A DNA stretch of 32,534 bases from Rhodosorus marinus CCMP1338 (GCA_029953675.1 JAMWBK010000016.1:1-32534), one strand, 5' to 3'. Shown: positions 5,887 through 32,534, counted from the stretch's first letter. Made by a program: numbers and translations. Notes: generated by a model from the sequence alone, not told the origin.

Positions 5887-6330
5887 GGACTTTAGTCACT
5901 TTACTGGCTGTACTCACTTTAGTGGACTTCACTTTACTAACATACTAGCGATAGGGACTTTCAGGCAGGCTTGACTGGCTTTACAGGCTTTTTAGCCCGA
6001 AGCGGGTCGCAAGGCGTGAAAAGGGAACTAGCATAGTGTGAAGCGGTGCGCAAGACTTGAAAAGTAACGAAGAACTAGGGAGAGAAACCCAGGCGCCGGT
6101 TGCACGCGGCGGCAAGCATGCTGCTTGTTTTAGAACATCGTTAAGGGCGACACTGAAACGGCGTATGAGCTCCTAGTATTCGATAGGGAACTCAGCGAAA
6201 CACTTCCTCATTCCAAACCCGATTTCCCCACGTGGCCCAAGCTTTCCACAGTGAAAGGCTGGAACCAGTAAGAACGACCAGCAACGAAAGCGAGACTGGC
6301 TATACTCAGTGGTTTTTACCGTTTCCGTGG
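5887..6330 (-). mobile_element. Degenerate B-like 3' fragment (endonuclease C-terminus and tail)
   Basis: Minus strand encodes remnants FQPFTVESLGHVG and RKCFAEFPIEY.ELIRRFSVAL, like B (FQPFIVESFGHV..RKCFAEHPTEYLALLRRLSVSL). Tail of AGTAAAG/CTAAAG repeats. Confidence 0.75.
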
Positions 6331-6337
6331 TTTTTGT

Positions 6338-6357
6338 TGGGGTTACGTTAGTCTGGG
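6338..6357 (+). repeat. Interstitial telomere-repeat patch TGGGGTTACGTTAGTCTGGG
   Basis: 20/20 match; lies between the B-like fragment and the start of element C. Confidence 0.9.
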
Positions 6358-8554
6358 ATACTCTGGGCATAAATCGGAAAATACAGCGGTTTGGAACTAA
6401 ATTCGTAATGATAGAGAAGGAATTACGCGAGCGGTACCCGGAGCCTCTTCTGCTCCCGAGAAACCCGCCCTCGGTTACACGCGCACGCGAGAAAGAGCTG
6501 CTGCAACAGCACCAGCAGAACCACCAGCATACAGGAGCAGAACAGGACGCAGAGATGAATGCAGAAAACAGAGCAGAGGGGAAGGCTGCAGCCTACCCAG
6601 CTGCCGCCTTTATCCACCAGCTGCACAGCTACGACCGGTGCTACCAAGCCCTGGGAATGGGCGAGTCTGACATCGTCGACTTTTACCAGGCAGTCTTCAA
6701 CCTTTATTCGTGCATAAATTGTTCGAACGAACTGCAAGGAGTGACAGCACGTCTTAATGAGCTTGCACAAAAACCGCGTATGTGGCAAGGTGGACCAGCC
6801 ACTACGAGCTCGCCTCAACCCCCGCAGCAGCACCAGCGGACGTGCGGCAGTCAATCAATATGCGCCAGAACCTATCAACAATCAACTTCCGGAGGGGACA
6901 GGTGTCCTAGCTCAGGCCCACTACGCAGAAGTATTCCCTGTCATCGGGACCTGCAGCACACGGGCAACGTACGCTCAGCGCACTGTCTAAAATACTCCAA
7001 CTCGAGAATCAGAGGCTCAAGTCCGAACAGCAGGACGCCCGGGCTCACAGACCCAGCAGGCAGCGCTGCGACAGCTGCACGCCACAGTGGCAGGGTCCTC
7101 CAGGGGACCTGAGATCAAACCAATCCTCGCCACCCTTAGAAACGTACGCCCGCCAAGGCAGGATGATGTGGCACCTTCCGACTTCACCACCGTCCTCTGC
7201 CGCGCGCTGGGAATCCCAGCCTCTCACATCGCGCATGTGGACTTCATCTCATCACACGCAAGCTTGCTCTGCCATCCGGATGCAATCCCCATAGTGCAGA
7301 GCGCTATCGCCCGAGGCTCGGAAAGAGACATCTGTCGTTCTCTACTCTCGCAGCCATCGATGAAACGCTGGAAGAGCGTCTACCGCCGTTACGAGGACTA
7401 CAACATCCACCAGCGGTCGCCGGGGAGAGTGTGGAACCCCTTGAGACTGCAGCAGCTACACACGCAGCCCCAGAAGCCTAGGCTCCTCACGGAGCCGCGC
7501 AGGCAACCCGCGGGACCATTGACGCCTCGGGTAACTCCAGCGCTACGTCTCAACTACCACAGGAGGATGCCGAAGAGGAAAATCCACACGGCAAGTGACT
7601 CTCTACACGGGACAGGCACTGGATACAGACAACCTGTTGGGATATAATGAACGTCAGCACATTGCCCCAGCGAACATCGGGGCCTAGACCCTGAAAAGGG
7701 CCATTGAGCAGACTATCCGGATCCGCGCGAGGCTTCGCAGAAGGCAACTCTCGTTCAACACTCTCGCAAGCGATACACGAGTACCTGGAGAGCAGACTCG
7801 GAGACCTACAAGCCAGACAACGTACTCCAACGGTACAAGGGAAGAGCGGGGAACCCCCAGCGCCTGCAGCCGCCACGAACGCAGACCCTGAAGCCTCGTC
7901 CCTTACAGGGGACGCACAGGCAGCCCGTGGGACAGTCGACGCTCCGGGCAATCTCCTAGCGCTTCCCAAGTACCCGAAGAGGATGCACCCGAGGATAACC
8001 CTCATGCAGAGCTCCTCTGCAACCTGCCCAAGCCTCCTCAACACAAGCGGTCGGGAGTATCCACTGATGGCACAGGCCAGGATATCGAGATGACTCCGGC
8101 AGCCGTAGAGGCTCCACAGGGCAACACTGCACCCCAGGCCGACCACACTGCCACCCATCATGCGATGGACACACAGGACAGCCAGGAAACACCTACGCAA
8201 TAATGCCCAGCCGACAAAGGGGAATCAAACGAAGACGCGACGAGCCTCTGTTCTTCTCGGATCGTCAAGCCTGGGTCAAACGGTGGACCGACTTCGTTGA
8301 CCAAGTTACGACAGGAGGCAGGCATTGGACGCGCCTAACACACTGCCCGGTGCCCACACGGCGCTTTGTACCCCGTGCCCACGTCAATACCTGGAGCCGC
8401 CTTCTTCGTGCAGCTCTTGAGATTTCCATGGACACAGCCGCACCCGCCAACGCTAGCCTACTTCTTGTCGCACTTCCAGGCCTGGTGCTAGGACGTTGTG
8501 CACTTGACATCGGTATTCAGGTCACACATGTGCTCCAAGGAGAATTACATAGGG
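6358..8554 (+). mobile_element. Element C: 5' part of a two-ORF retrotransposon (frameshifted ORF1 ~6408-8203, ORF2 start 8203), 3'-truncated
   Basis: ORF1 piece RNVRP..DFTTVLCRALG..HVDFISSHASLL is homologous to ORF1 of A and B. ORF2 N-terminus (DRQAW..GRHW..W..LL.AL..LPGL.LG.CAL.IG.Q..H.L.GE) aligns with D2 at 20741-21760. Confidence 0.85.
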
Positions 8555-8563
8555 GGGGTTACG
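8555..8563 (+). repeat. Short telomere-repeat seed GGGGTTACG at the junction of element C and a B fragment
   Basis: 9-nt match located exactly where C homology stops and B-RT homology begins. Confidence 0.6.
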
Positions 8564-8802
8564 CACGAATTAGGTCCCTGTCGGGAGCAGCTTGAAGATC
8601 GAGGGGTTCATCCAACAGCGTGCCCCAGTGGTGTAGCGTCATCTCGTCGGCTTTGGCTGCGATCCACGAGCCCCGGTCCGGTGGTAGGCTGCGCAACCAG
8701 TAGTTGAGTCGGGGACCGGCACAAAAGCGGGAAAGCAACTTTACGGGAAAGCAACCAGGCCGATTGCTGCATGCTGTCTGGTAGGCGCTCAATGGCGTCG
8801 GT
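8564..8802 (-). mobile_element. Internal RT-region fragment of a family B relative
   Basis: Diverged direct copy of ~10285-10505; encodes LLSRFCAGPRLNYWLRSLPP..HWGTLLDEPLDL..DRDLIRA. Confidence 0.9.
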
Positions 8803-9020
8803 CCCAGCATCATTTGTTGGACTGGATGAGTTGTGAATGGGGAGCCTGCCTGCTCGTGGCTTGCAATGCGAGACCAGCAGATCTGCGATGCGGCGAGACG
8901 GCGCCGTGCCGGATACTTATCTGGGAAGTCTACCAGTAAATCCACAACGGACACATAGCGATTGGTATTCATGGACTTTACTAGCATAGACTGAAGCGCT
9001 ACGCAAGGCGTGAAGATGAA

Positions 9021-12000
9021 CTAATAACTATGGAGGGAAGCATGCAACCCCAGGCGCCGATGGCGCGCCTCGGAAAGCATGTGGCTCGAATATCGCCAAA
9101 GGGAGACACTTAAACGCCTCAAGAGCGCCAAATATTCAGTAGGATGCTCAGCAAAACATTTCCGCAGCCACTCTAAATCCGAATTATCCACGTGACCAAA
9201 GCTTTCCACAATGAATGGCTGGAACCGGTGAGAGCGACCCTCAGCGCAAGGCAGACTGGCCATGCTCTCAGCATACCGTCGTTCCTTAACTCTTCGAAGG
9301 GCTGAAGCCGCGGCCCCCCGGCGGCGGGCGGCTGCGGTGAGGTGGGCGCTGGCCACGGGGAGGTAATCGCAAGGTCCACATATGTTGAGCATCTGGCAGC
9401 AGCGTCGGAGACGAGGAGATCGGCGATACAACGGGGCGGTGCAGAGTCCGAGATTGATCTGGGCAGTTCCGACTCAACCTCAACCGTATGCCCTATCCGA
9501 GTCAAAAATTCGCTGAGGATGTACTTGAGGCGAGTCAGACGCCTCGTACGGAGACCTCTCAACAGTCAGCAGGAACCCAGGAAGTGGTAGCCACAAGCGT
9601 CAATCCGGCTCTCACATCCCTGACAGAAAGACGGCCGATTAGAGTGCCACGGAGCCTGTGGCAAACCGAGATAGATCCGTGCGGCCTAACGGAACTGGAA
9701 AGCATCGAGACGATGACTCAATGACGACGGTAGAGTGGTTAACCACAAGTGCGAGAGGTGGCCTCCCATGCCGCGGAGACGAGCGGCAGTGGTAGGCGGC
9801 GTGAGAGGAGAATCGAGCATGACTGTGTGAGCGGAACTGTGTTGGCCCCAGGTGAGGCTATGTTGAATCACATCAGTGCGGGAGCTCCATAATCGGCTCA
9901 AACCCGGGTAGTCTGCAACAGGTGACCCGGGGCTAGCCTCTCCGTCATCGGCAAGAACTCGGTCGAGGGGAGAATCCTCAATCGCTTCAGCTCGTCCCCA
10001 TAACAGCTCCTTCCAGGAACGAAAGCGGGACCTATTTGCGTCCGGCACGGCGTTGCACCTCCTGAACGCGTGTTGAAGACCATCATAAATTGTCAAAAGC
10101 GGGGCGGCAGGGTCACTGGATCCTCGTTGGTCAAAGCTCGAGCCAAGAGGCAGGCACTTCGCATCTGGAATGTCACCAACGTTCGCAGCGCGGTAGCTCA
10201 GGAGGCAACCGCCGCTGGCGAGCATACCAGCCCACGGTCTGCGACGCCGAATCCCCCTAATCGCAACGGTAGAGCGATCTGTGCACGAATCAAGTCCCTG
10301 TTGGGAGCAGTTTCAAGATCGAGGGGCTCATCCAAGAGCGTTCCCCAGTGTTGCAGGGTCATCTCGTCGGCTTTAGCCGCGATCCACAAGCCCCAAGCTG
10401 GAGGCAGGCTGCGCAACCAGTAGTGGAGTCTGGGACCGGCACAAAAGCGGGAAAGCAAGCAGGCCGATTGCAGCATGCTGTCGGGTAGGTGTTCAATGGC
10501 GTCGGTGAGTTGCTTGTGCCGTGCCAAAACTCGCTCGCAGGATGCTTGGACAAAGTTGTCAGTCCCCAATCCGACGCCGTGGTGTTCGAACCCTTCACGT
10601 TCGCTGATTAGTCGCAGAGTGGGTGGCAGAGAGGCCAGCGACACGTCCCTCGGGGGGAGAAAGCGACATTTTTCTGTTTCCACAATCAAACCGACGCGAC
10701 GTGCAATCGCTTCGATCTCGGTCAGCCCCCTAGCCAGGGTCTCAGGGGTGCCCGGCAATGTTAAGTCATCGTGGTACGCGCAGATTCGAAGATCCGAGAC
10801 CTCAGTCGAAAGACGTAAAAGTACGAGCTGTAGGGCACAGGCATGAAGAAGAGATCCGCAAGGGTCGCCTTGTTGGACGCCAGTATGTGCTTGAAAAACA
10901 GTGCCCTCCGTTGTCAAGTAGGGGAGGCTCTCCCCTCCGTAAATACCCGATAGAAACGGCCGCGCCTCCGGACACACCCGTCGGAGCACCTCTAGCGCAT
11001 GCGTCTGCGACACACTGTTGAATGTGTTCCGGAAATCAACCACCAAGACTCCCCACTCCGGCCTACTGGCGCGTTCTAGCTCGATCCCATGGGTGATCAG
11101 TTCGCAACCCCCAGAAAATCCCACCCCTACTTGCAAGGGCGCCATAAAAGCTGTGACGCGCTGGCGAGGCGCTGGCATAGCCACCTCCCGGCTAACTTCC
11201 GTAGGCTCTCCACCATCCCGATCGGCCGGAGACGCGGGTGGGCCGGCTGGTGGTCAGGTTTCGTGAGCAAGCAAAGCTGTGCCTGCCGGAGATGTTCCCA
11301 TGGCGCAGACGCACCCGATACGCCCTGAAACAACTTGTTAAGGATCCTCAGAAGCGCGCTCTGGCCAGGCTGGCTCAGGGCCTGCAATAGCTCTGTTCTT
11401 AGTCCGGAGGGTCCGGGACAGCGTCCCCGACGCGAGGTACGAAGCAAATCCTCCAGGTCAGACTCACTGAGGGTCAGATCGATGCGAAACCTGGCCAACT
11501 CCGGACGGTCCAAGAATACCTCGAATTCAGGGGACAAGTCCACGTCGGACTCAGGGAACAAAGACGACACCGTCTGGGCGAGACTATCATCGTAAGGGAG
11601 GACAGGCGCCTGGCCCTCCAAAACCCGCGCCGCTCGACTTGAATCGCCCACTGCTACCAATTTCTGTACTCGAGCCGGCACGGGCGACACTGTGCCATCC
11701 CGAGTCCGACGGGTGGATGGTGCTGACGACGCCAAATAGCTGCGCTGTAGTACTTCGAAGTCTCCCTTCAAGAACAGGGCCAGTCGGTCTCGTACTCGCC
11801 ATCTGCGCTCCGATGTGTGAATGGGGGCCAGAATCAGGCGCGGTATGACCCCCAGAATCCTACCCAAATGACTGTGTCCCGAATGTTACGAGCCAGGCTC
11901 GTGAAGATGAAATCGAGAATGGTTCCAGTTACTAGAAGGTCTCCACGAGGGAGGACGACTGGGGGAATGCCCCCACGGAGGGGAAGCGAGCCTCCTTCCA

Positions 12001-13530: not shown

Positions 13531-14079
13531 CCTGAGGGAATGCGCAAAGGAAACGTTGCACCACCAATATGAAACCGCACCGAGAGAATAATCGACCAAA
13601 CCCAACCCAAATAGGAAAGGCCCCGCAACACACAGACCCGGAAGACAGAAGTAGTTGCAAATGCAAACGACGCCTTGTCTATGACGGGGCACATCAGCGC
13701 GGATCATGAAACTCTTGAAGGAGGAGGCGAAGCCCACTCCGTGGTTTGGGGGTTTGGTGGTTTTACGACCTCTTCAAAACAATCGAGCTTGTGCTAAACG
13801 ACTGCTGAGCTGAAAAATGTACTCTTGCGTTTCTGTGGACAGCCTGGTGCTCGGTTCCCCAATCGGAAATTCGAGCTGAAAATTTTGGCTCCTGTTCAAG
13901 GGACGACCGTCTATGGAGGTGTAGCCAGACTAAAACCAACAAGCGACAGCGCTCGGATACGCTCACCATGTTGGGCGTTCGTCGCTCTTTGCCTGGTTAG
14001 GAGTCTGATTGCAAAGATCTAATATGAATGAATGGTTTAATCGGAGGCTGAAAAAAAAAACCCCGAGGGGAAAAAAAGA

Positions 14080-16614
14080 CTAAGCGCGGCGAAGTACTCG
14101 CGCCTCCAACATCAAAGCGGCATTCATGCGCCACAGCAGGAAACTTAAGCGGGTAAACAACGATTGAAGACGGTCAGGGCGTTCGCGGAACAACTCCCGA
14201 AGCCAGCGAGAACCAACAGAGTCCATGAACCCAAAGCACTCAATGATCAGGGGTACCAAGCGATGTGCTAGTGCCGAAGCACGAACACCAGGGGAAGACA
14301 AAGCCCCCGCGTATTTGATCTCTTTGCGGCGTCTCATGCTGGCGGCGGCAGATCCACGGCGCTCCCCCGCAGCCGGGAGATAACGACTAGCTTGAGGGTT
14401 AGGAACAGCAAGATCAACGTATGTGGTAGGGCGGCTGTCGTCACAGGTGATCACCAGGTCGGCTACACGGCGTTCATCATTTTGAAAGTCCGCGACGGGT
14501 AAAGGTTTCTCACGTTCGATTTCCAGACCGGCTTGCCGGACTATAGGCCGAAGTTCCCGGTATAACAGGTTCAAGATCCGTGTGTGGCGGCGGGTTCGAG
14601 CACCTTTCACCGCCGGGCAACTAGCGAGCAGGTGGGCGCCAAAATCTGCGTTGTCTTCAGTCTGAGAGCAGAGAGGGCACGACGAACCCATCTCGTACGG
14701 CCAAGGGGGCTGATGTAAGCCGAGGTATAAGCGCAGTGAAGTACGCACTTCGAAATCCGACAGTGTGAGTGGCGGAAAGGCTGGTACGGTCATGAGCCAC
14801 TGAGAGCTAAGAACCCCTCCAAGACTACGTAGGCGGGCGCGAGCGCGAGAAGATGAGACCATCTGCGCGAGGAGTCGGCCATATGCAGCACGGTGCAAGT
14901 CCCAAGAAAGGATATTTTGCAGCGCATCCGTGCGTGCTTGAGCTCGGCTCCCAGCGCGCTGGGAATCATCAGGAGGATCAACTGGAACTTCTTCTTCTGC
15001 GGCAACCACTGGGTCAATCTCCCCTAGAACAGGTTCAGGCGCAGGACGAATCCCCGGGGCGGAGCCTCGAGAGCGGTCAAATACAGCTCGCCAGTCAGGA
15101 AGACGGGGTTGAACGGTTTCGGGGAGACTAGTACAGGAATTCAGGGCGGTTTGGAGCTCCAGAAACAAGTCTTGGGCGCTTTCCGGTACGCTGGGAAGCA
15201 AGACACCCCGCGAGAGGCTCGCCATCAAATTGCGGAACTTCCAGATACCCAAGCTGCTGAAAGTGGGAAGTGCGGTGCCCCAGGCCCCTACTGCAGCTGC
15301 AGGTTGGACCACAACACGATTGCAGAGGCCCAGTCCCCCCAATCGCAATGGGAGGCCTACCTGGGCGCGCACAACATCACAGGTGGGTCGCGGCAGAGCG
15401 CTCAGCTCTTCATCGAGAAAATACCCCAGGTCACGGAAACTTTCAGCATCCGCACGAGTGGCCAACCACCGGCCCCAATGAGTTGGAAGTGAGCGAAGCC
15501 AATAGGTTAACCGCTGACTGCAACAATACCGAAACAGCAACAACGAGTACTGGAGAAAGCCCGGAGGTAGCCGTCGAAGCTCTGCAACCAGCTGTCTGTG
15601 CTTACCGAGGAGCTGCAGCAACTCGCCTTCAACGAAGGACGGCGACCCGTAGGGGATGCCTAAGTGGACAAAACCATCCGGTCTCCAAATATCCTGGAAC
15701 GACGCAGGTACCTGCTGCTCTTGTGCAGCTACACCTCCCCAGTAGAACGATTTGTGATGATTAACCTCCAGGTCAACCCGCGAAGCCAAGGAGCGGAGAC
15801 GATCATAAGCGAGTGCTAGAGTATCAGGGGGCCCCAGGAGGCACACGTCGTCGTGGTATGCAACCGTACGAACCTGCGGGAATTCGGAGCGAAGACAAAG
15901 CAAGACGAGTTGTAGTCCACAGGCATGTAGGAAAGGGGACAAGGGATCACCCTGTTGTACCCCTGTGCGCGCCGCAAACGTGTGTGAGGAAGCGCCAAGG
16001 GTGTCATAGGTAGCCCCACGACCAAGCGGAGAATAAAGTCTACTAACAAAGGGAAAGCCTACAGGGAAGACTTCGCGCACCACGTGCATGAGAGCCGGAC
16101 GAGAGACGCGGTTGAACGCATTGGTAAAATCTACAGAGAGGAGCCCAGAATCTGGGGAGTACGCCATTTCCGAACGGAGTAAAACAGATAACAACTCACA
16201 GCCACCACGATAGCCCACGCCTAACTGCACGTGCCCAAAGAAACGGCGGGATTCGGGAACCAGGATTTTCACTAACCATCGCGCCGCCAATTTGCGGACC
16301 ACCTCAACCAGGCCAATAGGGCGAATAGCAGGGCTCGAGGCCGTGTGGCCGGGCTTCGAAAGCAGACACAACTGCGAACGCCCGACCAAGAACCACGCAC
16401 ACTCACACAGGGGATCACCATTCACGAGCGCTTCGACCACCCACGCCAACGCCTTCAAACCTTCATCACTTAAGAAACGGAGATATTCCACCCGCAGCCC
16501 CGAGGGCCCTGGGGAACGGCCCTTCGGAGCATCATGAACCAACTCACGCACCGCCTCCAGATTGACCACTAACCGCGCACTGGGATGTGGCGCGGCGCGG
16601 TACTCTTCCAACAC
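14080..16614 (-). CDS. Element A ORF2, uninterrupted 844-aa part: reverse transcriptase, CCHC knuckle and restriction-like endonuclease (true start ~17220, N-terminal part frameshifted)
   Basis: SPGPSGLR, IRPIG, VQLGVG, VDFTNAFN, VQQGDPLSP, AYHDD, HLGIPYG, QVGLPLRLGGLG; CPLC-X10-H-X4-C; RVADL..YVDLAV..KEIKY..LIIECFG. N-terminal pieces lie at 17032-17220 and 16569-16943. Confidence 0.95.
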   Translation of the reverse strand: MLEEYRAAPHPSARLVVNLEAVRELVHDAPKGRSPGPSGLRVEYLRFLSDEGLKALAWVVEALVNGDPLCECAWFLVGRSQLCLLSKPGHTASSPAIRPIGLVEVVRKLAARWLVKILVPESRRFFGHVQLGVGYRGGCELLSVLLRSEMAYSPDSGLLSVDFTNAFNRVSRPALMHVVREVFPVGFPFVSRLYSPLGRGATYDTLGASSHTFAARTGVQQGDPLSPFLHACGLQLVLLCLRSEFPQVRTVAYHDDVCLLGPPDTLALAYDRLRSLASRVDLEVNHHKSFYWGGVAAQEQQVPASFQDIWRPDGFVHLGIPYGSPSFVEGELLQLLGKHRQLVAELRRLPPGFLQYSLLLFRYCCSQRLTYWLRSLPTHWGRWLATRADAESFRDLGYFLDEELSALPRPTCDVVRAQVGLPLRLGGLGLCNRVVVQPAAAVGAWGTALPTFSSLGIWKFRNLMASLSRGVLLPSVPESAQDLFLELQTALNSCTSLPETVQPRLPDWRAVFDRSRGSAPGIRPAPEPVLGEIDPVVAAEEEVPVDPPDDSQRAGSRAQARTDALQNILSWDLHRAAYGRLLAQMVSSSRARARLRSLGGVLSSQWLMTVPAFPPLTLSDFEVRTSLRLYLGLHQPPWPYEMGSSCPLCSQTEDNADFGAHLLASCPAVKGARTRRHTRILNLLYRELRPIVRQAGLEIEREKPLPVADFQNDERRVADLVITCDDSRPTTYVDLAVPNPQASRYLPAAGERRGSAAASMRRRKEIKYAGALSSPGVRASALAHRLVPLIIECFGFMDSVGSRWLRELFRERPDRLQSLFTRLSFLLWRMNAALMLEARVLRRA

Positions 16615-17212
16615 TGATTCAAACGAGGAGTCCCAAGGGAGCCTTCCGAGGGAAAGAGCAAACGGAGCGGTGAAGAAAGATCATCGGAGTATGGAACCAC
16701 AGGTTGCCGCTGCTGGAGGATCCCGGCTGCCCGCCGCAGATCACCGCCTGCCACCGCGTGACGCGCCCGATTCTGTCGAGAAGACCTAAAAGCTGAGGGA
16801 GCACTAGGAGAAAAGGAAGAGAGAGAAGCGAAATAAAGACGTTCGAGGTCCTCAAAGTCGCCGGAAAGGAAGATTTGCAGTTTTCGGCGAGGGTGGACCC
16901 GGCGAGGATGTGGGTTGAGGGAGACGGTAGAGGAGGTGAGCACGAGGCGGGGAAAAAGAACAAGAGTTCCCAGCGAAGAGAGCAGTGAGGGTTCGCGGCG
17001 ACCTGCTGCCAGAGAAAATCCAACACCAATCCTAGGGGCTTATGAAGTCGACGAGGGAGCCGTACGGCCGTGCTCTGACGACAAAGGGAAGGGAACCGTC
17101 CGGGTAGGAGGCGACAAGGTGCGAAAACCACGAGAGAACACGCTCATGCCAGGCTGAGCGGTCACTGGTAAACAAGGGTAACCGGGACGACACGCACGCG
17201 GAGGAGGAAGAC

Positions 17213-18923: not shown

Positions 18924-19008
18924 TGAATGAATGAATGAATGGTTTAATCGGAGGCTGAAAAAAAAACCCCGAGGGGAAAAAAAGACTAAGCGCGGCGAAG
19001 TACTCGCG
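18924..19008 (-). mobile_element. 85-bp 5'-truncated family A 3' end
   Basis: Matches the A terminus (CGCGAGTACTTCGCCGCGCTTAGTC..TAAACCATTCATTCATTCATTCA). Confidence 0.92.
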
Positions 19009-19296: not shown

Positions 19297-20791
19297 ATGG
19301 CCGACTTGGTAGCGGGTGAGGGCATGGGCCTAGACGAATCTGGATTTGGTGCGGAGTATAGCAGGGGAGAACTGGGACCTGGAGTTGGCAGGGAAGTACC
19401 TGCACAAGTGCGCTGGGGAGGGGATGGGGGCGGAGAGGTTGATAAAGTTGCTGGAGGACGTGGAAAGGGTTTTATCTGGAGAAGAGATGGCCAAGTGGTT
19501 GTCACACGTCAACAACGACGATTGGAGCGTCCTTCAAACTTGTGCGCGATACCAGGAGAAGGGAGAGACGTTGATAAAGTTGCTGGAGTATGGGGGAAAG
19601 TTTTTACGCAAAGAAGAAATGGCCAAGTGGTTGTCACACGTCAACAACATCGATTGGAGCGTCCTTCATTTTTGTGCCTATTACCAAAAGAAGGGAGAGA
19701 CGTTGATAAAGTTGCTGGAGTATGGGGAAAAGTATTTACGCAAAGAAGAAATGGCCAAGTGGTTGTCACACGTCAACAACATCGATTGGAGCGTCCTTCA
19801 TTTTTGTGCCTATTACCAGGAGAAGGGAGAGACGTTGATAAAGTTGCTGGAGTATAGGGGAAAGTATTTACCCCAAGAAGAAATGGCCAAGTGGTTGTCA
19901 CACGTCAACAACGACGATTGAAAGAATCAATGAATGGTTTAATCGGAGGCTGAAAAAAAAAACCCCGAGGGAAAAAAAAGACTAAGCGCGGCGAAGTACT
20001 CGCGCCTCCAACATCAAAGCGGCATTCATGCGCCAAAACGGCGTCCAAAACGACGATTGGAGCGTCCTTCAAACTTGTCCCCGATACCAGGAGAAGGGAG
20101 AGGCGTTGATAAAGTTGCTGGGGTATGGGGGAAAGTTTTTACGCAAAGAAGAAATGGCCAAGTGGTTGTCACACGTCAACAACGACGATTGGAGCGTCCT
20201 TAATCTTTGTGCCTATTACCAAAAGAAGGGAGAGACGTTGATAATGTTGCTGGAGTATGGGGAAAAGTATTTACGCAAAGAAGAAATGGCCAAGTGGTTG
20301 TCACACGTCAACAACGACGATTGGAGCGTCTTCATATTTGTGCGCGATACCAGGAGAAGGGAGAGACGTTGATAGCGTTGCTGAATTATGCGGGAATGTA
20401 TATGTCCAAAGAAGAGATGGCCAAGTGGTTGTCACACGTCAACAACATCGATTGGAGCGTCCTTCATATTTGTGCGCGATACCAGGAGAAGGGAGAGACG
20501 TTGATAAAGTTGCTGGAGTATGGGGGAAAGTATTTACGCGAAGAAGAAATGGCCAAGTGGTTGTCGCACGTCAACAACGCCAGTGACAGCGTCCTTTCTT
20601 TGTGCGCAGAACGTCAGAGGGAGGGGGAGACACTGATCAAGTTGGCGGAGCATGGGAGCAAGTATATGTTGAAAGAAGATATGGGCAAGTGGTTGGGAAC
20701 AGTGGCGGACAGCGACACTAGACTTAAGCTCGAAAATCGGCTAGGAGCCACCTCCGTTGGAGCCGGCGGTGGCTCGAACACACTCCCATAG
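19297..20791 (-). other. Span marker only; the coding feature is on the + strand (next entry)
   Basis: Minus-strand ORFs here (e.g. 19330-19515) are shadows of the repeat gene and not supported as genes. Confidence 0.05.
19297..20791 (+). pseudogene. Ankyrin-like repeat protein gene: about 7 near-identical 44-aa (132-bp) repeats plus degenerate end repeats, disrupted
   Basis: Unit WSVLHFCAYYQKKGETLIKLLEYGEKYLRKEEMAKWLSHVNNID with 132-bp spacing (19520, 19652, ...). Interrupted by an A insertion at 19921-20048 and a 1-bp deletion near 20330. Start and end uncertain; the 3' end abuts element D2. Confidence 0.8.
19921..20048 (-). mobile_element. 5'-truncated family A insertion with 11-bp target-site duplication
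   Basis: AACGACGATTG at 19910-19920 and 20049-20059; A sequence 19921-20035 plus 13 extra nt (20036-20048). Confidence 0.95.
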
Positions 20792-22061
20792 TCTGGCGCC
20801 ATCTTTCTTTTCGGCCTTGATGAAGGGCAACAATCGGCTGCTGCTCAGGGCCTGCCGTAGCATACGTGGAAATATGGAGGGGTTCTGCACCAGACTGCGC
20901 AGGAATCGAACCAGAAGAGGCCTGTTCGATGGAATCACCGCCTGGAGATGCTCCGCGCGAAGACCACTCGGTCCAGGGCCTGTTTTCGGCGGATGTCGGT
21001 TGATCATTCCAAGGAGAGATTCATCGCTCGCATCAGCTGGGTTCCATTGGCGGGGAGGGTGCTCCAGGGCGGTTTCGAGTAGTCGGTGCATCTCTGCCGC
21101 AACATCCGGATGTAAAGCTTCCATTGAGGCATCTGGAAATAGTTCACACAAAGCATTCCATGTCGAGGACGTCTGCGATGCGAGCTCCGTGGCCTCCAAG
21201 CGCTGGGCAGCTGCAGAGAGGCGCCCACACTGAGCCAGTTTCACCACCTGTCGATTCCGCCTGCTTTCTCTTTGGCTATCCGCTCTCCGCTCACGGGGTG
21301 ATGGCTGGGTAGCGGCCGCTAAATTCAGCGCCTGCCATACCACTGAGAATTCTCCCTCTAACAGATGCCCCGTTTGTACTCCGATCGGAAGGGCACAGAT
21401 CCCTAGCGACAGGCCAGGGAGTGCCATTAAGGATAGGCGTAAGAGTGGATCCGGGGTGGTGTCCACTGCGGGGCGGCTCAGAGCACGCTGGAGTAGTAGG
21501 TTCCAATGCTTGACTTGCGCATTATGGACATGCTCTCGAGTGCGTACTGGGCTGTTGGTGACCATCCACCAGTGCCGTCCGGAGTCTGTTGCGGTGTCCA
21601 GGAACGTGTGGAGTTTTGCCTGCCATGCTTCAGGGTCGGTGGTGATCAGCACCCCAGGAGTAGGTCGTTGTCGGTGAGCGCTTGCTCTGCGAGGTGAGCG
21701 AGAGGGGCTCGGTGTGTAGTCGTCGCGCGGGCGTTTAGTACTCGTGGGGCGTCTCGGCATTACTGGGGAGTATTGTATTGGCCGTCCTGGGTGTCCATCT
21801 CCATGCTCTCATCTGCGACTGCCGTAGCGTCCACGCGCGTGCGCTTCTGCTTAGGAGGCTCCTGGATGTTACACTGGAGCTCCGCGTGCGGGTTGTCGTC
21901 AGCTTCTTCCTCCTGTCCATGCTCGAATTCCATCGAGGCTGACTGGTCGATGGCGTTCATAGTGCTCTCGCACGGTGGTGCTGTGTCCAGGTTAATGGGC
22001 AACTCTGCATGGGGATTTTCGTCCTCTCCAGTGGTGGTTTCCCCTTCGTTCGCAGCCATGG
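20790..22061 (-). mobile_element. Element D2: ORF1 C-terminus (22059-21760) and ORF2 N-terminal part, truncated at both ends
   Basis: ORF2 contains GRLSAA..LE, GPGPSGLRAEHLQ, SSRLLPFIK; TAATG stop-start overlap at 21762-21758; homologous to element C. Confidence 0.88.
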
Positions 22062-22080
22062 AACCCCAGACTAACGTAAC
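22062..22080 (-). repeat. Telomere-repeat linker GTTACGTTAGTCTGGGGTT between D1 and D2
   Basis: 19/19 match to the terminal repeat, G-strand on minus. Confidence 0.93.
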
Positions 22081-24954
22081 TGTAAACTTTACTCGGCAAC
22101 TGCCTAATGCAGCGCAACACTAATTCTATCCAGATCTAGGGAAAATGTGTGTGTTTAACCCCGACTCCCGGGGTCTCTAGCTACGATAAAAAAGAAAAAT
22201 AAGGGATCAGTGGCTGGTCCGACTGATCCACGCGCAAAGCCCCTAACGCGAGCTCTGGGTTCCCTGCCCAGAGTCTTCTGTTTAGTTGAGCCCGCACGTT
22301 GCTCAACTCGTACTGCTTAGTTAGCATGTGCCCACAGCCCTCACGGAGAAAGTCTTGGGTCATCTGCCCTGTTCTGCCGAAGGTTTCTATCGCAATCGGA
22401 ATCAGTTTGTCATCTGGATGCTCTGTCGCCATCGCCTCCTTGTAGTGTGCAAGTTTCCAACGCTCCGCCTGTTTTGCTGCATAACCATTGTTGTCTTTGC
22501 TGTTGGCTAGGTGTCTCGCCTGTAGGGGTGACACCACCGTCACATCGATCGCAAATCGTTGCCAGGTTCGAGGGTGTATAGCTACCAAGTCAGGTCGTAG
22601 ATTCGAGTTCGTGAAGTAGTCTGTAGGTTCTTGCTGAACATCTCTGAGCTGCCATCTGTTGAGCCAACGCGCCAGCTCAGTGCAGAGCTCATCATGTCGC
22701 CGTTGCCAGAGCCCAGTCGAGGTCTGACAATGATGGAATCTTTGTACACCGTTCGTACGGTGTGTACTATTACACGTAGTACACCTCTCCGTCGTCCGCA
22801 GTCCCGGAATCGGGAGACCCAGCAATTGTCGGATATTCAGGTGCATGCCTCTCCCACTCAATTTTCGGGGTCCGAATTGTGGCAAATCTCTTAGCCAGAC
22901 GCCTGAACCTGCTCCTGCAGCGGAACGGATTCGGGCACGATGTTCCGGGTCGAGTAAGGGATCCGTGACCAGTCGGGTGAAAGCAGTAAGGTGTGCCTCT
23001 CTTGAGAGGGTCTGTCGTAAGGAACCTTGCTTCACCGCAGACTGGTCAGGGGGGGGGAATTTGCTGCAGGGGCAGCAGTCAGGTACGTGGGGTTGAGGAG
23101 CTGCCTTATTCGGGGGCTGGTTTCCGGTCTCAGTCTCCCCCTAATGGCTGTAGTTGCCACTAGGATTTGGGAGGGGAGGTCGTCAGTAGAGCGGTGTAGT
23201 GTCCTCGGGGGGTTGAGCAGCTGTGGTGTAGCTTCCTGGGTGCGTTCTAACAATTTTTGTAGGTGGGGCCAATAGCCCTTGTTAGCTGCAAAGGTTTGCA
23301 TCCAACCTGTGTAGAAAGAAATAGGTTGGATGCGCCTTCTAGTGCAGAATCCCAGTCCCCCCCATCGGCAGGGGAGTGCTACCTGCTTCCAAGCCGGGTG
23401 CGTTCCGTCAGGGTCGTCCGCATGGGCTGTTTGTAGACAGCCTAGTAGCCTTTCCAACTGTAGTCGTGTGTTGTAGTCCGCTTCTCGTGCTAAACTTCTG
23501 CCGTAGTGGTAAGCCACTGTCCTTAGGGTGTAGTCAAGTCTCGTTTCCGAGCAGTATCGGAACAGCGCCAGTTGTGTGTTGAGCTCTTCAGGAGGCAGAT
23601 GGGCTATCTCTTTGCCCAGTGTTTCATGCTTGTTTTCTAGTGTTCTCAAAGCTTCTTCCACATATTTTCTCGTCCCAATGGGAATGGAGTGTATGGTTAC
23701 TCCTTCGCGAGAAACATTGAGGTCCGGCATGTATCTGGTAACCAGTCGAGGGGATGCTATGTGGTAGCCGAATAGGGTGCACTTTTGAGGCTGTAGTTCC
23801 GCCCCAATGGTAGGGAGGGCATTTTGACTCCACAGTAGGGCATCTTTCAGGGACTCCAGGGGGCCCACGAGCGTGATATCGTCATGGATGGCGACAGTAG
23901 TCAGCTCAGGGTATTTCTGCCGCAGTGCTTCGAGAAAAGGCGCCAGTGAGAGGGCGTGTAAGGCAGGTCCCAAAGGATCTCCTTGTTGTACTCCCGTCTG
24001 CGCTTGTATGGGGTTACGCGGGGGCTTTGTCTTCCCCTGGTGTTCGTGCTTCGGCACTAGCACATCGCTTGGTACCCCTGATCATTGAGTGCTTTGGGTT
24101 CATGGACTCTGTTGGTTCTCGCTGGCTTCGGGAGTTGTTCCGCGAACGCCCTGACCGTCTTCAATCGTTGTTTACCCGCTTAAGTTTCCTGCTGTGGCGC
24201 ATGAATGCCGCTTTGATGTTGGAGGCGCGAGTACTTCGCCGCGCTTAGTCTTTTTTTCCCCTCGGGGTTTTTTTTTTTTTTCAGCCTCCGATTAAACCAT
24301 TCATTCATTCATTGTAGGTGTAGTCGATCTGGATGCAGTGTTCCGTCTGTAGCTTTGGGGCGCCAGCCAAGGAGCGTAGGTGAGTCCTCGCAGTTGCTTC
24401 CATATCCCAGGCGGTAGATGGCTGCCAGCTCTGGGTAATGGCGGTCGACTAGTTGTTTGGCAATACTCCGATCAATTCGGTTGAACGCATTCGCCAGGTC
24501 GAGTCGTAGAACTGCCGATTGTGGTTCACAGTAGAGATGGGCCTGTATTGCGTGCAGGGACCGTTCGCAACCTCCACTGACGGCAAGGCCTAGTTGCAGG
24601 GGGACGAGGAGCTCCCGAAGTCGTGTGGTCACGTGACCTAGTACCCACTGTGTCGCTAGCTTTCGTAGGACCTCAGGAACGCCAATAGGTCTGACAGCAG
24701 GGTGCGCAGGTGGGGGCCCAGTAGTAGGGGACTTGACAAACGGCAGGAGCCTGCTGCTGCGGAGAGCCCTGGTCAGGACTGCCGGGAGCCGCTCCGGAGC
24801 CGTGGCCAACTGTCTCAGGAACCGTACCAGGTGCGGGTGTGCCTCACGCGTTAGCATCTGTAAGTGCTCTGCGCGGAGCCCGCTGGGCCCGGGACATTTG
24901 TCTTTCGGCAGCAGGGTCAGTTTGGCGAGTAGACTCTCATCCGAGGCTTGTCCG
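22081..24954 (-). mobile_element. Element D1: 5'-truncated RT-CCHC-RLE retrotransposon with intact 3' end, interrupted by an A insertion
   Basis: GPSGLRAEHLQ, VRPIG, DLANAFN, QQGDPLGP, IHDD, LPCRWGGLG; C..C..H..C; RPDLV..IDVTV..K..Y..IETFG; stop 22181; 3' UTR to 22081. Confidence 0.93.
24009..24311 (+). mobile_element. 5'-truncated family A insertion inside the D1 RT, with 5-bp TSD and telomere-repeat filler at its 5' junction
   Basis: TTGTA at 24004-24008 and 24312-24316. Removing the insert and one TSD restores in-frame HPDRLHLQAQTGVQQGDP. The first 10 nt are TGGGGTTACG. Confidence 0.93.
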
Positions 24955-24960
24955 GTAACC

Positions 24961-25138
24961 GTAAGCTTTACTGGGCAGCTGCCTACTGCAGCGCAACACT
25001 ACGTCTAATCCTATCTAGGGAAAAACTTACTGGAACCCCGCTACCGGGGTCTCATGCTACGTTCAAAAGAAAAAACAGGTACCAGCGGATTCTCCAGCTG
25101 GTCCACGCGCAAAGCGCCTAATGCTATCTCTGCTATCT
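24961..25138 (-). mobile_element. Element D': 178-bp 3'-end fragment related to D1
   Basis: EIALGALRVDQLENPLVPVFFF* vs D1 ELALGALRVDQSDQPLIPYFSFLS*; 3' UTR aligns with D1; followed by GGTTAC (24960-24955). Confidence 0.88.
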
Positions 25139-25159
25139 TAACCCCAGACTAACGTAACC
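25139..25159 (-). repeat. Telomere-repeat linker GGTTACGTTAGTCTGGGGTTA between F and D'
   Basis: 21/21 match. Confidence 0.93.
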
Positions 25160-26020
25160 GCGTACACTTTACTGAAGAACTCCCTATTGGAGCCCATTAA
25201 GAAGCAATAAGGATCCTATTGGTCAGGAAAGAAACCCCTAATGGGTTGTGTGGCTACGTTCTAGGATAGGGACGATGTCATAGTCTGCTTCGTCGACACG
25301 ACGAGCCTGGGTGGCAAGGATAGCGTTTCCTTTCCACAAAGTGCGGTTCAAGATCGCCCGAGCCTCACTTACTTGCGTTGCCCGCTGATCCAGGTGTATA
25401 GTCGCTTCCTTGAGGAACTCACTCGCTTGTTGTCCCATCTGCCCAAATGTTTCCAGGCAGAAGGGGACGAAGATGTCGTCGTTATGTTCTCCGATACTGT
25501 CACGGTATTTGGACTCTTTAAACTTTTCCGCTTTCCGTGCCGCATACCCGGTCTCCCAAGACGCTTTGTGTAGGTGTGTTCTTTGCAAAGGCGAGGTCAC
25601 CTTCACATCGATCACGTAGTGCTTGCCTGTTCGTGGGTGTCGGGGCTAGAATGTCAGGCCGAAGCCGACTGCCTTGGTAGTGTCCGGTCGGTTCTATTGT
25701 CACTTCTAGTCGCCATTGTCTCAGCACTGTCGCCAGGGCGTCCCTGACCATGTTATGCCGAATTGTCCAGCTCCCGGTAGAGCTGGTGCAGTGGTGAAGG
25801 CGTTGAATGCCTGCAGCGTCGTGTGGTTGGGAACATATCGTACACGTACTAAGTATTCGTACACCCGGCAGGGGCAATCCCAACAGTTGTCGAAGGCTCA
25901 GGTTCAGTTCTCCGCTACTTAGGCCGCGTCCGTGTTTCCTTGGCAAGTCTCGCAGCCAAGTACCGCCTCCTGATCCCTTACAGGAGCGTATTCGCGCACG
26001 TGCCGTCTCGCTGATCTCCG
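25160..26020 (-). mobile_element. Element F: 5'-truncated copy (CCHC, RLE, 3' UTR)
   Basis: ARIRSCKGSGGGTWLRDLP, CTIC..H..HC, RLRPDIL, IDVKVTSPLQ..KESKY..CLETFG; stop 25238; one frameshift near 25630. Confidence 0.92.
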
Positions 26021-26045
26021 CGTAACCCCAGACTAACGTAACCCC
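26021..26045 (-). repeat. Telomere-repeat patch GGGGTTACGTTAGTCTGGGGTTACG
   Basis: 25/25 match; joins element F to the duplicated segment starting at 26046. Confidence 0.95.
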
Positions 26046-26183
26046 GAAATAATTATCGTAATACGGAGCTCCAATTCGTAGCTCTCCCCAATGATGACGT
26101 GCGCAGAAATTTTGCCTTGCTGATAAAGACCAAATCTTCGAGTCCGGCGGCCTCTGCAAGAGGAATAACCCAAGAAAAATCAT

Positions 26184-26391
26184 GGGTTTGGAGTGGTTGC
26201 GGAGATGCTTTGCTGAGCATCCTACTGAATACTTGGCGCTCTTGAGGCGTTTAAGTGTCTCCCTTTGGCGATATTCCAGCCACATGCTTTCCGAGGCGCG
26301 TCATCTGCCCCTGGGGCTGCATGCTTCCCACCCTAGTTCTTAGTTCATCTTCACGCCGTGCGTAGCGCTTCAGGCTATGCTAGTAAAGTCC
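26184..26391 (+). mobile_element. Family B 3'-end fragment (also at 30472-30679)
   Basis: Encodes LEWLRRCFAEHPTEYLALLRRLSVSLWRYSSHMLSEARH; ends CTATGCTAGTAAAGTCC. Confidence 0.9.
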
Positions 26392-26538
26392 ACCTAAATT
26401 GGCAACTGTTTTCAAAACACAAAGGACGACAGTAAAGCTCAAAATTAATCCTCACATCGAGCAGTTCGCTGCTACCACCAGCCAATATGGTGCTGAGGAT
26501 CACGCGGCCAACGTCGAACGGAATTTGCCCCATAAAAC

Positions 26539-26600
26539 TCTTAGTCTTTTTTTCCCCTCGGGGTTTTTTTTTCAGCCTCCGATTAAACCATTCATTCATT
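26539..26600 (+). mobile_element. 62-bp family A 3'-UTR insertion with 8-bp TSD
   Basis: CATAAAAC at 26531-26538 and 26601-26608; the paralogous empty site has a single CATAAAAC at 30824-30831. Confidence 0.95.
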
Positions 26601-27061
26601 CATAAAACCCTGCAGTAAGTTGGAATCAATAAAATCTTCCGGAATATTTTCGTCCCAATGCATACGACAAGAGTAAGCAAGTCTCTCTCCGAATCGATTG
26701 ACCATCGTTGTTTCTTCTCTTTTACAAACTCAGGTAGTAGTGAAGTTCAATTTCATGCGAGTGCAAAGTTTCTAAATATAGGTTGCAGGAGAACCAATAA
26801 TATCCTCCGTTTTCTTGTGGCCGCGGGCCAAGTTCAATGGATTTTTGAAGTTTTCTGGTCGGTCCCTTGATATGGTGGCCAGCACTTCCGGACGTGAACG
26901 AGCAACGGGTGGTCAGCCAGGAGAGTGGCCCTTAACGATTAGGCATTGCGGTGAGGGAACCAAGGCAACGGAAGAAGCATAGTTGCCTGGGCGTATCATA
27001 GACGCCTGGGGTTGTGCACGGTGAGTGACTGACCTAGTAGTCAGCTGCGACGATAGCCGCC

Positions 27062-27300
27062 GCACTTCTTCCGGTATTCGGAGATCCGGCCTGACATTGT
27101 GGGACGGCATCCAACGAGTGGGCATGTTTACCTGTTGGAAGTGATGGTAACGACACCACTGCAACTTCATCTGTTGCAGGAGAGCAGCTGGAAGAGTGGG
27201 TATGTGGCGAAGAAAGCGGAATATAGCAAGGTGGCACACTACGCGGAAGCGATACGGAATGAAAGCGGAGAACTCAAGCTGGACTATATTACATGATAGA
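27062..27300 (+). mobile_element. D/F-like endonuclease-domain fragment
   Basis: HFFRYSEIRPDIVGRHPTSGHVYLLEVMVTTPLQLHLLQESSWKSGYVAKKAEYSK aligns with F (RPDIL..DVKVTSPLQRTHLHKASWETGYAARKAEKFK). Confidence 0.85.
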
Positions 27301-27308
27301 TATTCGGG

Positions 27309-29969: not shown

Positions 29970-30333
29970 TGTTTTGAGCTCCTCAGTAAACTGGCAGTAA
30001 AACATAAAAAGAATTCGATATTTATTTGATAGCTTTCATGTCATCACCGTCTTCCTAGAAATTTCCCAACCTCGAGGAGTTCCTCTTTATAGTTTGTCAC
30101 TGTATATGCCTGCTGATTGTCATCGCTCGGTTACATGACGGTGGATACGGATATGAACCAGCGTCTAGTACGATCGAACAGCATCTGAACCGCTCGAAAA
30201 TAGCCGATAATTAGAATCCTCTGGACTACGATTATTATTAAGCACTGTATTCTGTAGGTCTTGAATAGCTCTTCCAGGAGGACTTCTCGAACGACCTTGC
30301 TGAATACTGATGAGTGAGAGACCGAGTGTTCGC

Positions 30334-31288
30334 GAAATAATTATCGTAATACGGAGCTCCAATTCGTAGCTCTCCCCAATGATGACGTGCGCAGAAATTT
30401 TGCCTTGCTGATAAAGACCAAATCTTCGAGTCCGGCGGCCTCTGCAAGAGGAATAACCCAAGAAAAATCATGGGTTTGGAGTGGTTGCGGAGATGCTTTG
30501 CTGAGCATCCTACTGAATACTTGGCGCTCTTGAGGCGTTTAAGTGTCTCCCTTTGGCGATATTCCAGCCACATGCTTTCCGAGGCGCGTCATCTGCCCCT
30601 GGGGCTGCATGCTTCCCACCCTAGTTCTTAGTTCATCTTCACGCCGTGCGTAGCGCTTCAGGCTATGCTAGTAAAGTCCACCTAAATTGGCAACTGTTTT
30701 CAAAACATAAAGGACGACAGTAAAGCTCAAAATTAATCCTCACATCGAGCAGTTCGCTGCTACCACCAGCCAATATGGTGCTGAGGATCACGCGACGCGG
30801 CCAATGTCGAACGGAATTTGCCCCATAAAACCCTGCAGTAAGTTGGAATCAATAAAATCTTCCGGAATATTTTCGTCCCAATGCATACGACAAGAGTAAG
30901 CAAGTCTCTCTCCGAATCGATTGACCATCGTTGTTTCTTCTCTTTTACAAACTCAGGTAGTAGTGAAGTTCAATTTCATGCGAGTGCAAAGTTTCTAAAT
31001 ATAGGTTGCAGGAGAATCAATAATATCCTCCGTTTTCTTGTGGCCGAGGGCCAAGTTAAATGTATTTTTGAAGTTTTCTGGTTGGTCCCTTGATATGGTG
31101 GCCAGCACTTCCGGACGTGAACGAGCAATGCGTGGTCAGTCAGGAGAGTGGCCCTTAACGATTGGGCATTGCGGTGAGGGAACCAAGGCAACGGAAGAAG
31201 CATAGTTGCCTGGGCGTATCATAGACGCCTGGGGTTGTGCACGGTGAGTGACTGACCTAGTAGTCAGCTGCGACGATAGCCGCCGCAC
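30334..31288. repeat. Segmental direct duplication, copy 2 (of 26046-27065)
   Basis: Near-identical; lacks the A insertion and has no telomere repeat at its left edge. Confidence 0.95.
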
Positions 31289-31520: not shown

Positions 31521-31673
31521 GTCCGCTCGACGGACAATGTGTAGTCGGATTTGTAGCCATGTGATGCTGCTGTCTGCTCGACGGACAACGTGTAATCGGA
31601 TTTGTACCCTTGTGATGCTCTTGTCCGCTCGACCGACAATGTGTAATCAGATTTGTACCCATGTGACGCTTCT
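31521..31673. repeat. Tandem repeat, 3 x 51 bp
   Basis: Units start at 31521, 31572 and 31623 (GTCCGCTCGACGGACAATGTGTA.TCGGATTTGTA.CC.TGTGATGCT). Confidence 0.9.
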
Positions 31674-31809
31674 ACCACAACGGCCGGGTTTGTCCTCGGA
31701 TCTTATTGAAAAATACTTACAACCGGGGGTGGGTGTCCTATGAGAGGGAGAGGAGACAGATCGATTTAAACAATCATAGGGTTTGCAGTGTTTATTTTTT
31801 TTTTTTAGC

Positions 31810-32040
31810 TCTTATGTGGTGCATGTGGACTTTATTGCCTCCCATGCCTGCCTGCTGTGCCATCCAGACGCAATTCCGATTCTCCAAAGTGCCAACTCCC
31901 GAGGAGTTTTCCGGACTGGGATATTCGGATCCTTCACACAACGACACCCCGATCGACAAGTAAGCCTTTACACTGGCCAGGCGCTGGACCCAGACAACCT
32001 TCTGGGTTATACTCCATTCCAATTGGCACTCGGGTGTTTG
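31810..32040 (+). mobile_element. ORF1 fragment of a C-like element (family E) next to the telomere
   Basis: VHVDFIASHACLLCHPDAIPILQSA vs element C AHVDFISSHASLLCHPDAIPIVQSA. Confidence 0.85.
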
Positions 32041-32041
32041 C

Positions 32042-32156
32042 GTTACGTTAGTTTGGGGTTTTGGACGGCTTTGTTTGTGGAAAACGACGGAAAAAGGTGA
32101 TAAAAAGTTACAAGTATGATTGTGAAGGAGGTACGCGGGCCGTTAGTCTGGGGTTA
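32042..32156 (+). repeat. Two sub-terminal telomere-repeat patches (32042-32060 with one mismatch; 32141-32156 perfect) flanking an 80-bp unrelated segment
   Basis: GTTACGTTAGTTTGGGGTT and CGTTAGTCTGGGGTTA. Confidence 0.8.
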
Positions 32157-32170
32157 GGTCCGGTGCTACA

Positions 32171-32533
32171 TGGGGTTACGTTAGTCTGGGGTTACGTTAG
32201 TCTGGGGTTACGTTAGTCTGGGGTTACGTTAGTCTGGGGTTACGTTAGTCTGGGGTTACGTTAGTCTGGGGTTACGTTAGTCTGGGGTTACGTTAGTCTG
32301 GGGTTACGTTAGTCTGGGGTTACGTTAGTCTGGGGTTACGTTAGTCTGGGGTTACGTTAGTCTGGGGTTACGTTAGTCTGGGGTTACGTTAGTCTGGGGT
32401 TACGTTAGTCTGGGGTTACGTTAGTCTGGGGTTACGTTAGTCTGGGGTTACGTTAGTCTGGGTTACGTTAGTCTGGGGTTACGTTAGTCTGGGGTTACGT
32501 TAGTCTGGGGTTACGTTAGTCTGGGGTTACGTT
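32171..32533 (+). repeat. Terminal telomere array (TTAGTCTGGGGTTACG)n, about 22.7 units
   Basis: Homogeneous 16-bp tandem repeat running to the window end, G-rich strand 5'->3' outward; one unit near 32460 has GGG instead of GGGG. Confidence 0.9.
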
Positions 32534-32534
32534 G

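Follow-up and report, generated by a model that had tools for sequence, protein, structure and literature searches.

The window analysed here, a 32,534-nt stretch of DNA from the red alga Rhodosorus marinus CCMP1338 (GCA_029953675.1, JAMWBK010000016.1), holds a head-to-tail array of copies of retrotransposons that lack long terminal repeats (non-LTR), the D/F elements, interleaved with short tracts of a telomere repeat. All coordinates are positions of the whole window, and the array is read on the minus strand. From 26045 to about 20806 the order is a 25-nt telomere tract, the copy F, a 21-nt tract, the element end D', the spacer GGTTAC, the copy D1, a 19-nt tract and the copy D2. The repeat unit of these tracts is identical to the unit of the array that ends the contig, the 16-mer TTAGTCTGGGGTTACG, and the 13-mer TTAGTCTGGGGTT has four interstitial minus-strand copies in the window against 0.02 expected by chance. 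The original prediction had already given this order, the head-to-tail layout and the co-orientation of the elements with the telomeric G-strand, all of which the mapping of tracts and elements bears out; the extent it proposed, 20790-26045, stands for the array and fails at its D2 end, where homology stops near 20806.

The first tract (26045-26021, minus; GGGGTTACGTTAGTCTGGGGTTACG) has its G-strand on the minus strand. On its left it begins at a junction of the healing type, where a duplicated segment, S, stops early and gives way to GGGGTTACG; copy 1 of S (from 30333) runs on beyond the point where S stops at this tract. F (26020-25160, minus) is 5'-truncated, with only the linker-CCHC-restriction-like endonuclease (RLE) part of the second open reading frame (ORF2) and the 3' untranslated region (UTR), carries one frameshift and ends in ..CAGTAAAGTGTACGC. 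Beyond the 21-nt tract (25159-25139, minus; GGTTACGTTAGTCTGGGGTTA) lies D' (25138-24961, minus), which preserves the 3'-terminal 178 bp of a D-type element, ends in ..CAGTAAAGCTTAC and has 77% nucleotide identity to the 3' end of D1. The spacer GGTTAC (24960-24955, minus), which has the length of a target-site duplication, separates D' from D1 (24954-22081, minus), a 5'-truncated D-type copy with reverse transcriptase (RT), linker, CCHC, RLE and 3' UTR and the terminus ..GAGTAAAGTTTACA. Its ORF2 begins at about amino acid (aa) 226 of the reference contig L001 and has one frameshift or stop near 23035, and a 298-bp, 5'-truncated fragment of a second element, E (24015-24312, plus), lies within its RT region in the opposite orientation. 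The 19-nt tract (22080-22062, minus; GTTACGTTAGTCTGGGGTT) leads to D2 (22061 to about 20806, minus), a 3'-truncated copy with a short ORF1 (22059-21760, 99 aa) and the N-terminal 318 aa of ORF2. Near 20806, D2 gives way to the antisense strand of a gene made of 132-bp (44-aa) repeats; a D2-like Logan contig reads on as RPIAVPEVLRK at this point. All four array copies (F, D', D1 and D2) are thus truncated, and D2 is probably 5'-truncated too, because L001 and the copy at 7120 in the window have upstream sequence in common.

The full plan of the element is found in L001, a 4.2-kb transcript-like contig whose ORF1 (247 aa) overlaps with its stop the start of an ORF2 of about 1040 aa; the ORF2 pieces of D1, D2 and F all align to this contig. 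Two open reading frames had been predicted, and the claim holds because ORF1 and ORF2 overlap as TAATG in D2 (at 21760) and as ATGA in L001. ORF1 is short or acidic and overlaps the ORF2 start; ORF1 of D2 has no significant similarity to that of L001. ORF2 consists of an N-terminal region with no known domain, the RT, a linker with the CCHC motif and an R2-like RLE. The Pfam RT profile RVT_1 matches the D1 fragment with an E-value of 7.5e-6 and 26.2 bits, slightly below the cut-off of 29.6 because the E insertion splits the RT domain, and the motifs LDLANAFNRI, GVQQGDPLGP and IHDDITLVG can be read directly. Sequence matches in the PDB are to R2 and L1 ORF2 only. Pfam is blank over the N-terminal 240-340 aa of ORF2 in D2 and L001, where no APE endonuclease is thus seen, and gives no meaningful match on ORF1, the ORF2 N-terminus or the RLE module.

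The RLE assignment comes from alignment and structure. HMMER aligned the C-terminal series CTTC..HHC..RRH..RPDLV..IDVTV to the R2 RLE; C84, C87, C102, R112, H113, D148 and D163 are invariant across D1, F, L001 and E, and in a 30-sequence alignment E136, D164, K194, E217 and G220 (numbering one higher) are at least 90% conserved. For the C-terminal 284 aa of D1, AlphaFold (AF2) gave a model with a pLDDT of 88.5, and in a Foldseek search of the PDB with the D1 C-terminal model the top 7 matches are all R2 (probability 1.0, TMq 0.58-0.66). Together, the RVT_1 match, the R2 sequence match and the Foldseek matches agree with the RLE-retrotransposon identity originally proposed, and on sequence and model the D/F elements are two-ORF non-LTR retrotransposons with a C-terminal CCHC and RLE downstream of the RT. 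Their 3' UTRs have in common a putative hairpin, GACCCCGG-nAG-CGGGGTT, and a motif A(A/G)TAAAG 8-10 nt ahead of the 3' end ..TAC, which has no A-tail; Rfam and tRNA scans were empty. The D/F subfamilies are as diverged as expected from the original prediction, with 45-65% aa identity, and the copies therefore represent separate insertions and not tandem duplication. Closer relatives are proteins such as MMETSP P0123 for F (about 70% aa identity), D-type proteins from Rhodosorus marinus transcriptomes for D1 (62-71%) and R. marinus-type proteins for the 30 aa of D' (93-97%).

The junctions between elements and repeats fall at nearly constant positions of the unit. All four canonical D/F 3' ends, three in the window and one in independent transcript contigs, join the repeat at TAC/(N)GTTACG (a slash marks the junction), and each is then followed by (N)GTTACGTTAGTC: GTGTACGC/GGTTACG for F, GCTTAC/GGTTAC for D', GTTTACA/GTTACG for D1 and GCTTACC/GTTACG for the contigs L003/4/5, whose order is ..AATAAAGCTTACC/GTTACGTTAGTCTGGGGTTA/5'-truncated element. 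These 3' ends lie within 2 of the 16 phases (P ~0.004, corrected for window choice). The seven 5' junctions all end between GGGGT and GGGGTTACG, a range of five phases (P ~0.005). When F, D' and D1 are excised together with one copy of their overlaps of 7, 5 and 5 nt, a perfect in-phase telomere array is left. Because the target unit is 16 nt long, not 5-7 nt, insertion phase, cut stagger and duplication can be read from the junctions. The junction strings quoted in the original prediction were exact on re-reading, and its single repeat phase and 5-7 nt overlaps find support both in this restored array and in the same 3' and 5' phases seen independently in JGI transcriptome contigs.

Orientation is equally regular. 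The sense strand of the element is the G-strand in the window array, in L003-5, in the contig L012, in a fragment at 8209-8550 and in a relic beside the terminal telomere, and the only exceptions are two antisense fragments, both internally truncated. In L012, from a second transcriptome, a 12-unit tract separates a broken element from a near-full-length one in the same orientation and ends GGGGT/ at the 5' end of the latter. Long tracts thus exist, and the short relic tracts may be stable survivors; in MoTeR arrays of the rice blast fungus, interstitial tracts of at least 3 units are fragile (PMC7367193). Transcript-like contigs cross the inter-element telomere tracts at L012:2814-3067 and L003-L005:2199-2220 (JGI samples 3300017118 and 3300016967). 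One of the tracts crossed has 12 units. To judge from these contigs, transcription of the arrays appears to run through the telomere repeats.

We consider it likely that the D/F elements are site-specific non-LTR retrotransposons that insert in the 16-nt telomere repeat TTAGTCTGGGGTTACG with their sense strand co-oriented with the G-strand, as the original prediction had proposed overall. On this model, a form of target-primed reverse transcription, the RLE would nick the C-strand at a predicted 5'-CGTAAC(C)^CCCAGAC, and the 3'-OH at the nick would prime reverse transcription from the 3' end of the RNA, possibly aided by pairing of a read-through GUUACG. A cut of the G-strand 5-7 nt further 3' would yield the duplication GGTTA(CG), and incomplete reverse transcription would leave the 5' truncations. 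Every insertion would recreate the target on its 5' side, and elements would therefore stack: D' may have entered the regenerated site just upstream of D1, with only GGTTAC left between them, and F and D2 would sit in neighbouring repeat units. The window array probably arose in a short run of telomere repeats added to a broken S copy, to be afterwards internalised and severed at D2 by rearrangement.

Several observations weigh against this interpretation or restrict it. The canonical D/F 3' junctions examined number only four, and none of the copies seen is intact and demonstrably active. In the L001-type sister subfamily, all three 3' ends (L001/6/7, L008 and position 3257 of the window) are followed by non-telomeric sequence, the last belonging to a fragment at 2995-3257 (plus) that ends in ..AATAAATGTACC and has 91% nucleotide identity to L001 (the same 91% DNA identity holds over 3022-3212). 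The telomere specificity put forward in the original prediction is shown for only four D/F-type 3' ends, against none of three in the sister subfamily. L002 and a D-like 3' UTR fragment in L012 likewise adjoin host genes. The array itself lies about 6 kb internal to the terminal telomere, inverted and pointing away from the real chromosome end. Moreover, in a tandem-repeat target the overlaps at two junctions are not provable as duplications made by insertion.

The same junctions could be given other meanings, all of lower probability. An extension of the preferred reading, which we regard as unlikely, is that the machinery of the family is part of the making and repair of chromosome ends, with RLE-cut or uncapped telomeres capturing RNA or DNA and the elements acting as semi-domesticated end-builders; it is suggested by the joins of telomere tracts to antisense cDNA (tract to fragment X, and 8563/8564), by a mosaic of X and segment S, and by the transcripts with 12 units between elements. 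There is also a slim chance that the elements have no sequence specificity and accumulate in the subtelomere, their tracts stemming from telomerase healing at element ends or from break-induced replication and their constant phase from microhomology of ..TTAC ends with the telomerase template. The window is indeed rich in healing-type junctions and in short interstitial tracts of both orientations, the ..TTAC of the element 3' ends is similar to GGTTAC, and L001-type copies lack telomeric flanks. However, template pairing of ..TTAC predicts ..TTAC/GTTAGTC, whereas ..TTAC/GGTTAC is observed. Four of the seven healing-type junctions (26045, 6339, 8553 and L012:2814) begin at GGGG, which is phase 7, unlike the canonical 3' ends with their following (G)GTTACG at phase 9-10; this contrast is not absolute, because those at 27334 and 32042 begin at an element-like GTTACG (the remaining one, at 32171 in the terminal array, begins at TGGGG). 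In addition, the 6-nt spacer between D' and D1 and the perfect in-phase reconstruction suit a staggered cut and not repeated healing, and the 5' junctions are phase-restricted too.

Distinctly improbable, in our judgement, is attachment to chromosome termini independent of the RLE, at a G-overhang or an uncapped end, like that of Drosophila HeT-A/TART or of Penelope-like elements lacking an endonuclease. Two antisense, internally starting fragments do stand at the 3' end of a G-strand tract (27309/27308 and 8563/8564), as such a process would have it. However, sense is the G-strand in the main array as well as in L003-5, in L012 and in the relic beside the terminal telomere, the opposite of what G-overhang priming predicts, so that such priming is excluded for these copies; RLE residues are conserved between subfamilies, and overlaps like target-site duplications are found. 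It is very improbable that the assembly created this inverted internal array artificially, for instance through a chimeric long read linking two chromosome ends: an odd 4.8-kb unique segment between outward-pointing tracts would fit one, but later E insertions in D1 and in S copy 2 indicate a real evolutionary history, independent transcript contigs show junctions of the same types, and the element-telomere junctions would stand even in a chimeric contig.

Site-specific insertion into telomere repeats has precedents in several groups, as the original prediction noted: the literature lists SART/TRAS, MoTeR, FoTeR, Cnl1, GilM/GilT and Zepp (Chlorella). MoTeR1/2 of Magnaporthe/Pyricularia oryzae, FoTeR of Fusarium oxysporum and Cnl1 of Cryptococcus are telomere-targeting RLE elements of the CRE/SLACS/CZAR clade (PMC7367193, PMC12857005). 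They resemble the D/F elements in combining an RT with a C-terminal RLE and in lying head to tail within telomere repeats, where the interstitial tracts are short (from half a unit up). Copies truncated at the 5' end occur in both, as do internalised relics that still carry vestiges of telomere sequence (PMC7367193, PMC12857005). Unlike these fungal elements, the D/F elements have two ORFs. The 3' ends of MoTeR and FoTeR are followed by C-strand repeats, with the 5' ends closest to the chromosome end, whereas D/F 3' ends are followed by the G-strand. MoTeR has a variant-repeat 5' end, TTCGGG(TTTGGG)n, of which there is none at D2 or at the second element of L012. In FoTeR duplications are not resolvable, in contrast to the phase and duplication readable in the 16-nt D/F target.

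SART1/TRAS1 of Bombyx mori and other insects also insert in telomere repeats at a fixed nucleotide position, and SART and TRAS lie in mutually opposite orientations, a precedent for the G-strand-sense orientation of D/F. They differ in being R1-clade elements whose endonuclease is N-terminal and of the APE type and which carry poly(A) tails, as against the C-terminal RLE and missing A-tail of D/F. GilM/GilT (Genie) are RLE-type non-LTR elements as well, arranged head to tail in telomeric arrays of the protist Giardia (PMC10088271); they have a single ORF and a host from a different supergroup. R2 matches the RT and the linker-CCHC-RLE module best in both sequence and structure. It likewise has a tail-less 3' end, and its site-specific target-primed reverse transcription is what is predicted for D/F. 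Its target is 28S ribosomal DNA, unlike the telomere repeat of D/F, it has a single ORF, and its N-terminal zinc-finger/Myb domains were not detected by Pfam in the D/F N-terminus.

Because telomere-specific RLE elements are known (MoTeR, FoTeR, Cnl1, GilM/GilT), the D/F family belongs to a known kind, of which it is a new lineage. Literature searches found no telomere-targeting retrotransposon of a red alga, and the searched passages of the genome paper (PMC10250338) do not describe the telomere unit or the D/F elements. To the telomere-targeting retrotransposons known from insects, fungi, Giardia and Chlorella, D/F adds a red-algal lineage, in which an RLE element uses the G-strand-sense orientation, the reverse of fungal RLE elements. 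The system would be a good natural substrate for studies of R2-like endonuclease retargeting. It also accounts for the patchwork subtelomere and gives annotators of Rhodosorus a telomere motif and two retrotransposon families.

The second of these families, element E, has an 844-aa ORF with RT, CCHC and RLE, and is present in the window as two long copies (1-2790, plus; 14024-16766, minus) and as fragments at 24015-24312, 26540-26603, 18927-19008 and 19926-20035. Overall identity between the long copies is about 97%, and over many long stretches it reaches 100%; such near-identity suggests that E has been active recently. Its 3' end is ..CCCCTCGGGG(T)nCAGCCTCCGATTAAACC(ATTC)n. E leaves very short 5'-truncated copies of 62-300 bp, and for the 62-bp copy the empty site is preserved in a duplicate segment, with a 5-8 bp duplication (ATAAAAC). 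E resembles D/F in ORF2 architecture, and their RLE modules are 27% identical at the aa level. Its insertion sites, however, are non-telomeric; a duplication of 5-8 bp accompanies insertion, and the element ends in a (CATT)n tail. Shared architecture with ordinary insertion sites thus makes telomere targeting a trait of the D/F lineage.

The true terminal telomere is at 32171-32534 on the plus strand, which carries the G-strand: (TGGGGTTACGTTAGTC) is repeated 22.8 times at 32171-32533, with one GGG variant unit near 32460. Red-algal telomere motifs are poorly documented, and long units not of the TTAGGG type are not documented for red algae in a review (PMC7046594). Beside this telomere, at 31809-32170 (plus), lies the sub-terminal relic, an N-terminal ORF1 fragment whose sense is co-oriented with the terminal G-strand; after it (32042-32170) come the short tracts GTTACGTTAGTTTGGGGTT and GTTAGTCTGGGGTTA, followed by spacers of 82 nt and 14 nt respectively, and neither spacer matches any element 3' end or other sequence retrieved. 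The D/F array is not part of this end: it is an internalised, inverted relic outside the present functioning telomere. To explain the 4.8-kb unique segment, which has telomere tracts pointing outward on either side, an inversion, fusion or mis-join is needed.

The array starts on a shortened duplicate of segment S and ends in the rearrangement at D2. This duplicate, S copy 2 (26046-27065), is 98% identical to 30333-31288 and contains the 62-bp E insertion (26540-26603). Upstream of it is X (27064-27308, plus), an internal RLE fragment of a P0124-like subfamily, truncated at both ends and with 48% identity to aa 892-954 of L001 ORF2 at 27066-27254. X is antisense to a fifth minus-strand tract (27334-27309; GTTACGGGTTACGTTAGTCTGGGGTT), which lies immediately 3' of the 3' UTR of a host gene. 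X and S together form a 1.26-kb mosaic (26046-27308) between two telomere tracts, whose edges have 6 in-phase nt (GGGGTT) in common, as if it had been inserted at the same target; the mosaic has no element 3' end, and the overlap may be a coincidence, because its right edge also resembles a healed break. We considered segment S as a telomere-targeting element with a defined 3' end and rejected it: S-like copies have only a core of about 220 bp in common and diverge before the tract. This core, with five copies in both orientations (5061-5528, 6027-6307, 8972-9267, 26177-26392 and 30465-30680), is a subtelomeric repeat family.

Broken elements, duplications and short tracts pointing either way make the region as a whole a patchwork. 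A 19-nt plus-strand telomere tract lies at 6339-6357. At 8209-8756 (plus), a P0003-type N-terminal ORF2 piece (8209-8550) is followed by GGGGGGGTTACG (8553-8563) and an antisense element fragment (8564-8756); the part of the ORF2 piece at 8428-8550 has 93% identity to the N-terminus of the R. marinus CCMP1338 protein NDN08_004844. Together with the matches of D1 and D' to R. marinus proteins and of 3022-3212 to L001, this identity points to R. marinus, or a species very near to it, as the host. Here, as at the junction of the fifth minus-strand tract with X, a G-strand tract is joined without a gap to an element fragment that is internally truncated and lies antisense, as expected from reverse transcription primed by the 3' end of the G-strand, or from end fusion.

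A protein-pattern scan of JGI metagenome contigs, based on the RLE alignment, gave 269 pattern matches, none of which was confirmed, and the exact telomere pattern was absent from the metagenome contigs and prokaryote genomes searched. An L001-type ORF2 with 96% aa identity is present in a metagenome-assembled genome labelled 'Cyanobacteria bacterium J06638_22' (GCA_039819145.1, JBCBSL010000655.1), most likely as red-algal contamination of the bin. Two tandem repeats complete the window. The 132-bp (44-aa) repeat gene at 19433-20695 has 9.5 copies, is open on the plus strand with the motif ..EEMAKWLSHVNN..LHICARYQEKGETLI.., is broken by an E fragment and has its 3' end joined to D2 antisense. 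A 51-bp repeat of 2.9 copies lies at 31521-31670 in the sub-terminal unique region.

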